DNA of 60,812 bases, the filler included, from Hausera hauseri (taxonomy: Eukaryota), in assembly GCA_046269625.1 (NCBI GenBank). It is 10 parts of 10 records of this genome, joined end to end, with 100 filler letters (N's around TTAATTAATTAA, not from the genome) between each part and the next. Parts side by side here need not be neighbours in the genome. Positions count along the whole stretch, not along the records: positions 28,895 to 33,257 come from JBJURY010616776.1; 9 more parts are not named here. One strand, written 5' to 3'. This document shows, piece by piece, positions 28,895 to 33,257 of this stretch (positions are counted from its first letter, which is position 1; every line of letters begins with the position of its first letter). The notes beneath the pieces were generated by a model. That model saw only the letters and a list, made by a program, of their open reading frames with translations. It made no database searches and was not told the DNA's origin. Position numbers and translations under genes: made by a program.

Positions 28895-29200
28895 GAATGC
28901 TCCATCGGTTATACGAGGACGGGGAAAATCGACGTCTCTTCGACTCGTCGGTTTTCCTGCCATTGTTCCTGAGACTGATGGCGGCAACCGACCGCATTTA
29001 CGAATCCCTGGCTCCTTCGAAAAGTCAGTTAATTCCAGGCTGCCGTACCATCAAAGCACTGCGCACACTGACGTCGAGCTCCAGCTCGGACGATATTCGA
29101 GCCTGTCCACGTCGACGTCGTAGACTCGGATCGTCTTGATCCGCTACCGAGGAGTCGTATGCCTCCGCAGATGGCGATTGTCATGAAAATAAATGTTCCA
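28895..29200 (+). repeat. Dispersed GC/CpG-rich coding-like repeat, homologous to 53520-53870 (-)
   Basis: HRLYEDGENRRLFDSSVFLPLFLRLMAATDRIYESLAP vs HRFYQDGGNRRLFDLSVFLQVFLTLIAATDRLYESSAP. Confidence 0.75.
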
Positions 29201-29313
29201 ACAATTATCCAGTTTTGTTCATTTATATTTTTGTTTACTTGCTGTTTTATTGTTTTGGCGCAATGAGGTTATGGGGCAGAATTATGGTCTGTATTAAGGC
29301 AGAAACTTCTAAA

Positions 29314-31925
29314 ATGGTGGCACAGAATACCGCACACACGTCCCTTTCGCACAGGACCGTACATACTGGTTCAGGCATTCCGATAAACTCAGTCGTTGAA
29401 AACAATCCTGCTCAAACACCGCACACATCAGATGACAACAGTCAGGATAAAAATCAGAGTAATGCCGTCGAAAACAATCCGGCTACACTCATTCACATCA
29501 CCAAACGTGATTACACAACACCCGCTGACAATATCTTCAGCGCGGCTATCATTCAGGCAATCACAACGAGTGGAACTGAACAAAAGTCGAAGCCTGAATA
29601 TCCAAGCCAGGTTTCACGCACCAACACAGTCAAATCGGCACACAATTCCGATGACACAACAAAACCGCAAGTGATGCAAATTTCCATACGCGGATTACGC
29701 AACACGAAAGCATATCGTTTTTTGACACACATGTCTCTTAAGGCAATGCTACAACAGCTAGCCATTTCATATCCGGACCACATTTTTTCACGCAACGCGA
29801 ACATTTTGCGTCCATAGGATAGTCCAATTTTGGATCATTTCCCTAAAAATAACGCGACACTGCTCGCTACTCCGAAACTAAAAGGAGGCGCTGATGACCA
29901 CAAGCCGGACAAAAAAGCCGCAACTGCATCATCAGCACCGGCCAAACCTAGCAAATTAGCATGTCCCACTTTCTTCATAGGTTTGGACGGAACTCCATTA
30001 AAGTGGTTCCATGTGTTTGAAACATGGACTACTCAATTCAACATCACCGGCCAACTAAACGAGTCCTTAACACTAATACAATACCTGCAGCCAACAAGGC
30101 TCGCAGCAATAACGGATTTGGACACGTTACTGTCAAATGAAAAGGCGTTTGATAAAATCAGAGCAACAATATGCAAAGCATACCTGCCATCCCAACAGGA
30201 CCAGTTCAACTTGGTCTTCACCAAGCGACAGACAGGGAATATGAAACCTTCTGCTCTGCTTCAAAAGTTATGCTCAGAATTGAGCAATGCTGAGCTGGAC
30301 CTCCACAGCAATCAAATTCAAGCGGTACTTGTGCTATTACCGCCCGATACCACTTTGGGCGATGTGGCATCAAAAGCCAACAAAATACATGAGTGCACTA
30401 AAGGTACCGTAGAATCCGCATCAACGGAAAACATTCACTGCGTCACGGCGACCCACCAAAATAGATTGAACACCATTATTTCCGTACTGCACGCACTTGT
30501 AACGCACAAGAATCCGTCAGCCAGGGACTGTGTTTACATGTTTATCCTTTTTATATTTAAAAGTTCCATACACAAGGATGAGAACACTAAAGCAAATTTT
30601 CCAAAATTTGCCATTTCCACACACGATTTGGAGAATACGCCCATAAATGTTTCCATGGTTGTCAATTCGACAAGCCATCCGCAAATATAAAAATGCGAGG
30701 CACTTGCATTTATCACAATTATTTCGGTCCAGATGTAAAAATCTGTCGACCCAGCTGCAAATTTCACAAACCTAAATGGGCTCAGACGACCAACGGCACT
30801 TCGACTGGAAACTCAATCACCACAACTGCCGTGCACAAATAGCGAACGCATTGTCGATGCTATTTTCACCCTCAAGGCGGAGCCACTACACTCTGACATC
30901 TCGAAACAACTCCATTTTCTAATCGACACTGGTGCAGCTTTATCGCTGATACCTAGCGCATACGCTAGACCTACGCTGGTCTCCCATGCATCGCTCAAAG
31001 CTGCCAATGGCACGCGTATAGCAACTACAGGTACACTGTACCTACAATTTCACCTACAAGGCCGAAGATACGCTTGGTCATTCATATTGGCCGATGTCAT
31101 GCAACCAATCCTTAATTCTGACTTCCTAGATCACTACGATCTCACAATTAATTGCCTAAATCAACAACTCACCAGCGGGGGCAATCATTACCTCCACCCG
31201 CATTCACATTAACTACAAATGCTGTCACGGGCATTAAAATCGCAAATCCCATTGACATCGCTCCATTGCTGCAAGCGCAATACCCTAACCTGTTGAAACG
31301 CTCAGCACAACCAACACAGAAAGAGATGAATACATCACACTCTCTCGTCACATCATGTGACCGACCGATTCGATAACCCCGGAGGGAGCTTGACCCTGTC
31401 AAGCGAGCAGCCGCGGAAGCCGAATTCCGACACCTTGAAGAAACAGGCATCATACGCCATTCCACATAACCGTGGGCATCACCATTGCACATAATTCTCA
31501 AAAAGAACGGATCATACCGGCTTGTGGTGACTATAGAATGTTTAGTAACGTCACCATCCACGATTCATATCCAACACCGTTGGTAACAGACATATTGCAT
31601 TGCCTACATGATGCCGCAATATTCAGCACAATCAATCTGGAAAGGGCATACCATAAGATCACAGTGGCTACCGAAGATATTCCAAAAACTGCCGTAATAA
31701 CGCCTTTTAGTTTGTTCGAGTATCTACGTATGCCTTTTGGCTTACGGAATGCAAGTCAAACATTCCAACGCCACATAGACCAAGTCCTCATCGACATGCC
31801 TTATGCAATCTCGTATATAGATGACATATTGATTGCATCACCCAATGAAGCGACTCAAAAAACACATCTCGAACATGTTTCATAGGTTGAATGAAAACAA
31901 CCTAGTTAAACATAAACAAATGTTC
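29314..31925 (+). mobile_element. Decayed CsRn1-type Ty3/Gypsy element, divergent subfamily (UBL-gag, PR, RT; 3' truncated)
   Basis: MQISIRG...TPKLKGG (29674-29889), capsid P.FF...P.KWF..FE, two knuckles (CHFH..CFHGC, CIYH..CRPSC), FLIDTGA, PWASPL, YIDD. Confidence 0.9.
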
Positions 31926-33257
31926 AACAATTTTAATACTGTATAATTAGTTATAAAATAACTCAATTACTTTGAAATTGAATCGATCAATGTGACATGC
32001 TCAAATTCATATAAATTTGTTGACAAAGTAAATCAATTGTAAAATTTTTGAGTCATTTTTAATGGAGTCATTAACTCGTTTAATGTTCAAATAATAACTT
32101 AAAATATTCACGAATGGAAAACCGATCTTGCATCATTCAAAATTGTTCCAAAACATTTGTAAAGCTAGAGGTTTTATAAATCTATAATTCAACATTGATT
32201 TCAAACGTATCAATTTTTTGATCGACGAAAAAGCCACGTCTTACACACATCATCACCGATAATTAACCGACCGTTCAGCACGTTGACCTTGGGTATGACA
32301 AATTACTATTGATTTTCTGTATCAACTTCAACTAAGCGTTGTTCCGATGAGTCACTCAATCTTGTGAGCTGAAAATCATTGAACTTGCGCTTCAGTAACA
32401 GTTTTAAAATCATATAGTCTACGAAGCAATACAAATCCAAAAGGTTATAATTTCTTAATATTGAAACATTATTTTAAAACAAACTTCAGATTCCTTGTCA
32501 GTGATTATTTAACAAATTTTGTTGAATGGGAAAATTTTCCATATAAAATTAAAATGTATACGTCAAATACTAGTATTCCTTCAGGATTTTTCTGAAAGAG
32601 CAAGAATCGTCAAATATTTTGCAACGTTGGTCCATATTTTTATGACCGGGATTAAATGTACAAATTTCTGAAATAAAATTTTTTAGTGTTAGTTTGATAC
32701 AATCCGCCATTCATGAAAATGATTTGTCAATTTTATTTTGACTTGTAAGCATTATAGTAAAGTGGATCCCAACCACATTTTAGAAATTTTATAAGTATTA
32801 ACATTCAGATTATTATAAGTTCCATGTGAAATTATTTTAATGTTAAACACGACGTCATTAGCAACAAACCAAACCAAATTTGTTCAGTACCAGGAAATGC
32901 AATATATTAAAATGAATAAATTAAGACTGAATTTGGTGTGATTTTCGAACAGCTAAAACATTCTTGTTTAGCACATAAGCAATAATGAAAATAAAATAAA
33001 AATTGGTGGGTATGGATGAAAAAATAAAACGCTCCAGGAAGGGCTAAAATTACACAATTTTAACTTTCACTCCAGCGACGAGTAACATTGCAAATGTGTG
33101 AACAGATTTCTTCGGTCAACGGAAATTCAAGATAATTAGATTTTATTACGTAATCAATAAAGTAATGTTCATCGTTATATTCAGATTGAAATTGTCATTT
33201 TTGTTAATGTTTATCATGAAGAATTAATATTAACTCAAGTTACATTTCACTCACAAA

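Follow-up and report, generated by a model that had tools for sequence, protein, structure and literature searches.

A probable ubiquitin-like domain with a Gly-Gly end ahead of the Gag capsid in a decayed Ty3/gypsy-type retrotransposon of Hausera hauseri, and a possible site of host cleavage

Why would the Gag protein of a retrotransposon carry, ahead of its capsid, a segment that looks like ubiquitin and ends in two glycines? The question is raised by a decayed copy of a long terminal repeat (LTR) retroelement from Hausera hauseri (assembly GCA_046269625.1). The copy lies in one piece, positions 28895-33257 (record JBJURY010616776.1), of the stretch of DNA analyzed here, which we call the window: 60,812 nucleotides, made up of 10 parts of 10 records joined end to end with 100 filler letters between them. 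Positions count along the whole stretch, and all the features described are on the + strand. A sequence-only reading of this locus had described 72 codons at 29674-29889 as a ubiquitin-like domain (UBL) with a di-glycine end, fused ahead of Gag and perhaps released by a host deubiquitinase. Based on our data, the best explanation is that the segment is the decayed remnant of a UBL that is part of Gag in a small Ty3/gypsy-type family. Taken as a whole, that is, a UBL in Gag together with the host cleavage discussed below, this explanation has in our judgment about an even chance of being right.

The 72 codons were reproduced by translation, with one in-frame TAG at 29815-29817 and the two glycine codons at 29884-29889, which close the tail KLKGG. 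The segment is indeed in frame with the Gag capsid, as had been claimed: the stop at 29137-29139 is followed by a single frame that extends to 30690, with the TAG as its sole interruption. The claim that the segment mirrors ubiquitin at both ends held for the Gly-Gly end but not for the "MQI" start. The closest relative, the protein P0001, has no Met at that place, and the frame is open for about 150 codons upstream of M29674, with in-frame ATGs at 29263, 29284 and 29311. M29674 was rejected as a start codon on these grounds, the upstream frame being not only open but also conserved (the motif KMVA.NTA is common to the window copy and P0001, about 120-145 residues upstream of the UBL). The match of "MQI" to the start of ubiquitin is partly a coincidence. 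Given the upstream conservation and the different residue of P0001, the segment is internal to Gag in the lineage formed by the window copy and P0001.

For database searches the segment was used as two pieces, one on each side of the stop, and it was read through the stop (as X) in alignments and identity counts only. Neither piece matched a ubiquitin family in Pfam or any PDB chain by phmmer (E<=10); a comparison of the sequences themselves therefore does not establish a similarity to ubiquitin. That the resemblance would be more than a chance one rests on the homologues, the predicted fold and the layout of the protein.

To find relatives, 1.84 billion representative proteins were searched exhaustively by HMMER with the capsid piece of the window copy (29818-30687), and eight matches were obtained. 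P0003 and P0008 were rejected as relatives, since they are bacterial repeat proteins and the matches are spurious; six related proteins and the window copy form the basis of the family. Word-based protein searches, with the N-terminal 200 residues, P0004 or P0001 265-648 as the query, returned nothing or only the query itself, and no related DNA was found in scans of metagenome or viral contigs. P0001 (648 residues, E 2.6e-94, ~70% identity in the capsid) belongs to the same family as the window copy and is an intact Gag. P0004 (401 residues, E 5e-6, 26-28% identity) and P0007 (396 residues, E 6e-5) are distant relatives, the latter with the cluster mates P0009 and P0010. In P0001, P0004 and the P0007 group, a strand-rich module precedes the capsid core, ends in Gly-Gly and is followed by a variable linker. 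P0002, P0005 and P0006 are DUF7041-type Gag-like proteins that begin directly at the capsid core, without a UBL. P0002 (UYV70018.1) is annotated as a "hypothetical protein" of 1865 residues from the pseudoscorpion Cordylochernes scorpioides, and it is a mosaic of two DUF7041-type Gag copies and pol fragments of at least two different retroelements. This is the only relative with a named organism, which suggests that the wider Gag family has arthropods as hosts.

The window segment aligns with P0001 273-344 without gaps and at ~44% identity, and the tail ATPKLKGG is the same in both at 8/8 residues. The module ends in KLKGG in P0001, in KAYGG in P0004 and in RLLGGG in P0007, P0009 and P0010, which bears out the expectation that the Gly-Gly should be conserved in intact copies that carry the UBL. 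It stands at the end of the domain in three lineages that are otherwise only 26-38% identical, directly after the last strand and followed by further residues (ADDH in the window copy, TGAN in P0001, NDEP in P0004, GPKK in P0007, P0009 and P0010), an arrangement that is a trait of processed (type I) UBLs and of UBL fusion precursors. The linker that comes next varies among the relatives both in length (20-35 residues) and in sequence. Within the P0007 cluster, identities are 93% for the UBL, 82% for the linker, which has a gap of five columns, and 97% for the capsid; although the numbers are small, these figures would fit a constrained UBL followed by a free linker. The position of the domain also differs among lineages: P0004 and the P0007 group have 9-15 residues ahead of it, and the window copy and P0001 an extension of 120-145 residues.

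Does this module have the fold of ubiquitin? The whole of P0001 was modeled with AlphaFold2 from a five-row alignment and P0004 was modeled separately, while the window copy had its fold assigned through homology with P0001 (gap-free, 44%). The beta-grasp fold expected from the sequence-only reading was obtained: P0001 273-344 is predicted to fold as E-E-H-E-E-h-E, with strands at 272-278, 283-289, 308-312, 315-317 and 333-339, a helix at 294-304, a short helix at 323-326 and the Gly-Gly at 343-344. This order of elements and their approximate spacing are those of ubiquitin. By homology with this model, the TAG of the window copy, a sense codon in P0001, falls in the loop between strand 4 and the short helix. 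A Foldseek search of the PDB with the P0001 model found SUMO1, SUMO2, Smt3, the ubiquilin UBL, ubiquitin (variants) and ISG15, over ~77 columns, with template-modeling (TM) scores of 0.58-0.68 (target-normalized), root-mean-square deviations of ~3-4 A and E values from 3.6e-4 to 2.5e-3; one long and poor alignment was the sole exception in the list. Against BFVD, the matches were giant-virus and baculovirus ubiquitins and ubiquitin-bearing polyprotein fragments of bovine viral diarrhea virus (BVDV). The model of P0004 16-91 shows the same order of elements.

Sequence profiles gave three further signals, namely a Pfam match of ThiS to P0001 274-323 (E 0.26), one of Rad60-SLD to P0004 16-59 (E 0.9), and matches of the family profile to the PDB, where 7/11 sub-threshold hits, with E 0.43-1.6, were end-to-end alignments with ubiquitin or Ub-eS31. 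All three are weak, and as sequence similarities they may be said to agree with a beta-grasp fold. PDB searches by phmmer with the whole of P0001 and P0004 found no ubiquitin match; their single hit was a ten-residue identity to the bacterial enzyme BilD, described below. Considering the fold, the layout and the relatives together, we regard it as very probable that a real UBL with a Gly-Gly end is built into this Gag.

The layout of the protein is also informative about how the capsid is made. Between the Gly-Gly and the capsid core there is no Met, and the first Met past the Gly-Gly lies deep in the N-terminal lobe of the capsid in the window copy, P0001 and P0004 (within GNMKPS in the first two). 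A start of translation downstream of the Gly-Gly, which would have refuted the proposed fusion, is thereby ruled out, and a complete capsid needs the UBL to be translated too. As the reading frames show, UBL, Gly-Gly, linker, capsid and Cys/His knuckles are made as one chain. The Gag of this family consists of a leader or extension, the UBL with its Gly-Gly, a disordered linker of 20-35 residues, a capsid that is probably two-lobed and two Cys/His knuckles. With the predicted fold, the retention of the Gly-Gly and the lack of a downstream Met, the central claim of a UBL with a di-glycine end fused ahead of the Gag capsid stands.

The most likely function of such an arrangement is cleavage. A host cysteine protease, of the deubiquitinase or of the SUMO/UBL-protease type, would recognize the folded UBL together with its tail and cleave the chain immediately behind the Gly-Gly, as happens in cellular UBL fusion precursors and in cytopathogenic pestiviruses. 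The capsid-nucleocapsid part of Gag would then be released with a defined N-terminus other than Met, without need of the element's own protease; the new first residue would be Ala in the window copy, Thr in P0001, Asn in P0004 and Gly in the P0007 group. The leader plus UBL would be left as a separate product, which in the window/P0001 lineage would be the extension joined to the UBL and not a free UBL. We favor cleavage because the Gly-Gly has persisted precisely where the fold ends, in a domain otherwise diverged almost beyond alignment, and because the tail reads basic-Leu-basic-Gly-Gly in the window copy and P0001, or Leu-Leu-Gly-Gly in the P0007 group. UBLs that stay in their protein, such as those of ubiquilin, Rad23, Ddi1 and parkin, usually lack a terminal Gly-Gly, while processed UBLs keep it. 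Cleavage after the Gly-Gly by a host UBL protease seems to us a serious possibility, with chances slightly short of even.

Several observations weigh against the interpretation of the segment as a UBL cut by the host. No significant match to a ubiquitin-family profile (PF00240, PF11976 and similar) was found for the window pieces or for any of the relatives. The P0001 UBL was modeled with moderate confidence, from five sequences (mean pLDDT, the predicted local distance difference test, of 52-76 per ten-residue block), and the UBL part of the P0004 model has low confidence, with pLDDT below 50. In the Foldseek matches the identity to ubiquitin and SUMO is 13-19%, and host deubiquitinases read the surface of ubiquitin as well as its tail. 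The module of the P0007 group has ~54 residues, about 25 fewer than that of P0001 and P0004, and seems too short to hold the second strand and the helix. The tail of P0004 is AYGG instead of Leu-x-Gly-Gly. Finally, the window copy and P0001 agree less in the UBL (44% identity) than in the capsid (76%), although part of this difference is neutral decay of the dead window copy.

The most serious alternative is that the UBL is real but stays uncut, and serves as a built-in mimic of ubiquitin or SUMO, by which Gag or particles dock onto ubiquitin- or SUMO-binding machinery of the host (ESCRT-type sorting, proteasome receptors, nuclear factors with SUMO-interacting motifs, or the silencing machinery), the Gly-Gly being a leftover of the captured host gene. 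The evidence for the fold suits this alternative equally well. In the window/P0001 lineage the domain sits behind 120-145 residues, like integral UBL domains, and a divergence such as the one seen here argues against recognition by a standard deubiquitinase; moreover, ubiquitin fused to a retroviral Gag can replace late-domain function. On the other hand, a mere leftover would hardly explain why three lineages diverged almost beyond alignment all keep the Gly-Gly exactly where the last strand ends, why the basic-Leu-basic-Gly-Gly tail is the best-conserved part of the domain, or why the Gly-Gly persists at all, when integral UBLs generally lose it. On balance we consider an uncut UBL unlikely, though it deserves to be kept in mind. 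A different role may be imagined for the product of the cleavage that we favor: the freed leader-UBL, with its Gly-Gly exposed, could act as a modifier, conjugated to proteins of the host or of the element, or as a decoy that soaks up the machinery of ubiquitin- or SUMO-dependent silencing and degradation. Conjugation through E1, E2 and E3 is unlikely because the domain is so diverged, and we hold a modifier or decoy role to be quite improbable.

In LTR retrotransposons and retroviruses, Gag is thought to be matured by the element's own aspartic protease. That protease might cut the linker and separate a beta-grasp domain of matrix-like nature, much as retroviral MA, p12 and CA are separated, and the Gly-Gly would then have no part in processing. 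A disordered linker does follow the domain, the element does encode a retroviral-type protease, and maturation by such a protease is the rule in Ty3 and retroviruses; what it leaves unexplained is a Gly-Gly conserved at the very edge of the domain while the linker varies freely, and we consider this course of events improbable. It may also be asked whether there is a UBL at all, or only a chance pattern of MQI and GG in a fast-evolving, low-complexity Gag N-terminus, with the fold as an artifact of a shallow alignment. The sequence searches of Pfam and the PDB without a significant match, the moderate confidence of the model and the unconserved "MQI" would all be expected in that case. Chance would not account for an order and spacing of elements that match ubiquitin in two independently modeled lineages, for dozens of Foldseek matches in two libraries, all to ubiquitin-family proteins, for sub-threshold matches from three different searches that fall on beta-grasp families in the right place, or for the gap-free alignment of the window and P0001 domains. 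Such a coincidence appears to us very improbable, and a UBL with a Gly-Gly end that is cut by a host protease remains the reading that we prefer.

As for the element itself, its assignment to Ty3/gypsy holds for the reverse transcriptase (RT): the closest relatives of 31472-31882 in the PDB are the Ty3 RT 4ol8 (E 4.9e-23) and the Ty3 Gag-Pol 7q5b (E 2.2e-22). The order in the window copy is Gag, protease (with DTGA) and RT, and RNase H and integrase are gone with a 3' truncation after YIDD at ~31885. A long direct repeat was searched for in the piece 28895-33257 and none was found; given the 3' truncation, an LTR pair cannot be present in this copy. Membership in the BEL/Pao class was set aside on the basis of the Ty3 match of the RT and of the Pfam search of the window translation, in which neither Peptidase_A17 nor DUF1759 was matched.

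The Gag region opens with the N-terminal extension (29311-29673), which runs from the conserved Met (MVAQNTA) up to the UBL, in frame and open, and is of low complexity. It aligns with P0001 129-272 with many gaps. A repeated motif of the type AVENNPA(Q/T)T is present in it, with two copies in the window (29394-29412 and 29466-29484) and three in P0001. Both the matching extension and the linker (341-378) of P0001 were modeled with pLDDT below 50, and the extension ahead of the UBL is probably disordered. After the UBL (29674-29889), whose Gly-Gly codons lie at the same place in P0001, P0004, P0007, P0009 and P0010 and mark the proposed cleavage site, comes a linker of ~24 residues (29890-29961), rich in Ala, Lys and Pro.

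The helical, CA-like core of Gag follows at 29962-30525, with ~69-76% identity to P0001 and a gap of 14 residues relative to it. The N-terminal part of this core is DUF7041-like; the DUF7041 match is weak in the window copy (E 0.0056) and strong in P0005 and P0006, which have no UBL. In P0004, residues 113-275 are modeled as confidently helical (pLDDT 75-90), with weak Foldseek matches to the CA of HIV-1, the CA of murine leukemia virus and the C-terminal domain of PEG10 CA (E 9e-3 to 9e-2). At the start of the capsid core of P0001 (within 367-378; 29962-29991 in the window), the ten residues CPTFFIGSDG are identical to a stretch of BilD, a bacterial E1-like enzyme (PDB 8tyz, E 0.17), and in the window copy one of the ten is different. 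The identity is probably due to chance, though it is an odd one to meet beside a ubiquitin-like domain.

A frameshift between 30525 and 30594 moves both Cys/His knuckles of the window copy to another frame, where they are found at 30594-30773 (73% identity in a tblastn search with P0001 586-645). These two zinc-knuckle-like motifs have the unusual form C-x2-H...A..C..GC. The same pair is conserved in P0004 and P0007, and P0006 and P0002 have a single related knuckle (CYYH…C) without the GC.

Downstream, the remnant of the aspartic protease lies at 30739-31209. It includes the motif DTGA (30925-30936), and in Pfam it matches gag-asp_proteas (E 7e-4) and RVP, both weakly. The RT fragment (PFGLRNA...YIDDILIA) follows at 31472-31885, matched by RVT_1 of Pfam (E 2.2e-15), and almost directly behind it the element ends. 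Several stops and changes of frame interrupt the protease-RT region, and the RT is in another frame than the protease. Past about 31890 the GC content drops from ~45% to 24-31%, a sign that the copy breaks off behind the RT core. With a stop in the UBL, a frameshift, a deletion in the capsid and a truncation after YIDD, the window copy is a non-functional fossil. The DNA directly after the abrupt end of the RT (31886-33257) is very AT-rich (24-34% GC) and has no sizeable open reading frame; it is presumed to be flanking DNA of the host, or to mark a deletion by which the rest of pol and the 3' LTR were lost. On the other side, 28895-29205 is richer in GC (53%) and has an open reading frame of 80 codons at 28897-29139. 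None of its frames matches the first 100 residues of P0001, and this region could be a diverged 5' LTR, an untranslated region or flanking DNA. A TGGCGC stretch at 29256 resembles a primer-binding site. No part of the sequence had the look of human DNA.

In the literature searched (full text, with incomplete coverage), we found no description of a UBL in the Gag of a Ty3/gypsy retrotransposon; the nearest mentions concern sites of SUMO interaction in the Gag of errantiviruses, and domains related to ubiquitination in giant elements of planarians. If our interpretation is true, some elements hand the first cut of Gag to the ubiquitin or UBL proteases of the host, or carry a built-in signal of the ubiquitin type, and the UBL would be a new accessory domain of LTR elements, to be placed beside chromodomains, dUTPase, env and AlkB. 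It would also match, in a natural and long-lived form, the ubiquitin inserts that occur sporadically in pestiviruses, and would provide a testable link between transposon biology and the ubiquitin/SUMO system. Should the freed domain act as a modifier or decoy, it would be the first type I UBL encoded by a transposon.

How does this Gag compare with systems already known? As in Ty3/gypsy (Metaviridae) elements and the DUF7041-type Gag-like proteins of arthropods, the order, as far as it is preserved, is Gag, protease and RT, with an RT closest to that of Ty3, and a capsid core with weak similarity to DUF7041 and to retroviral CA is followed by Cys/His knuckles. The difference lies in front of the capsid, since P0002, P0005 and P0006 start directly at the core and have no UBL. 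A second parallel is found in Ddi1 (UBL, helical domain and retroviral-type protease), Rad23 and the ubiquilins, all of which have an N-terminal UBL in the same chain as helical domains; the ubiquilin UBLs are among the best structural matches obtained here, and, as in Ddi1, the UBL of the element lies upstream of a retroviral-type aspartic protease in the polyprotein. The UBLs of these proteins stay uncut and as a rule have no terminal Gly-Gly. Ddi1 occurs as a cellular gene across the eukaryotes, and beyond the common fold no homology between it and the Gag described here was seen, but the parallel may interest those who study the origin of that family.

Closer in layout are the cellular UBL fusion precursors (Ub-eL40/UBA52, Ub-eS31/RPS27A, FUBI-eS30/FAU and SDE2), in which a beta-grasp domain ending in Gly-Gly is made in one chain with a downstream protein. 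The deubiquitinase USP36, for instance, cleaves FUBI-eS30 right after the Gly-Gly (PMC8354635, PMC10611586). The near-N-terminal UBL of P0004 and the P0007 group recalls these precursors, and eS31 is among the sub-threshold PDB matches of the family profile. In contrast to them, the partner here is a retrotransposon capsid, the Gly-Gly is followed by a linker of 20-35 residues, the domain of the window copy and P0001 has an extension of 120-145 residues ahead of it, the identity to ubiquitin is only 13-19%, and cleavage is a proposed step. The cytopathogenic pestiviruses (BVDV Osloss, CP1 and CP Rit, with inserts of ubiquitin, NEDD8 and other UBLs) likewise have a ubiquitin-fold module within the polyprotein of a viral or mobile element, directly upstream of a protein that needs a defined N-terminus, and polyprotein fragments of BVDV that contain ubiquitin are among our structural matches. 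In BVDV, cellular ubiquitin C-terminal hydrolases cut after the ubiquitin insert and so generate the N-terminus of NS3 (PMC8310069). The pestivirus inserts are recent and nearly unchanged copies of host ubiquitin, present in individual strains within the replicase of an RNA virus, whereas the domain described here is old, diverged and common to several lineages of elements, and it has its place in the Gag of a retrotransposon.

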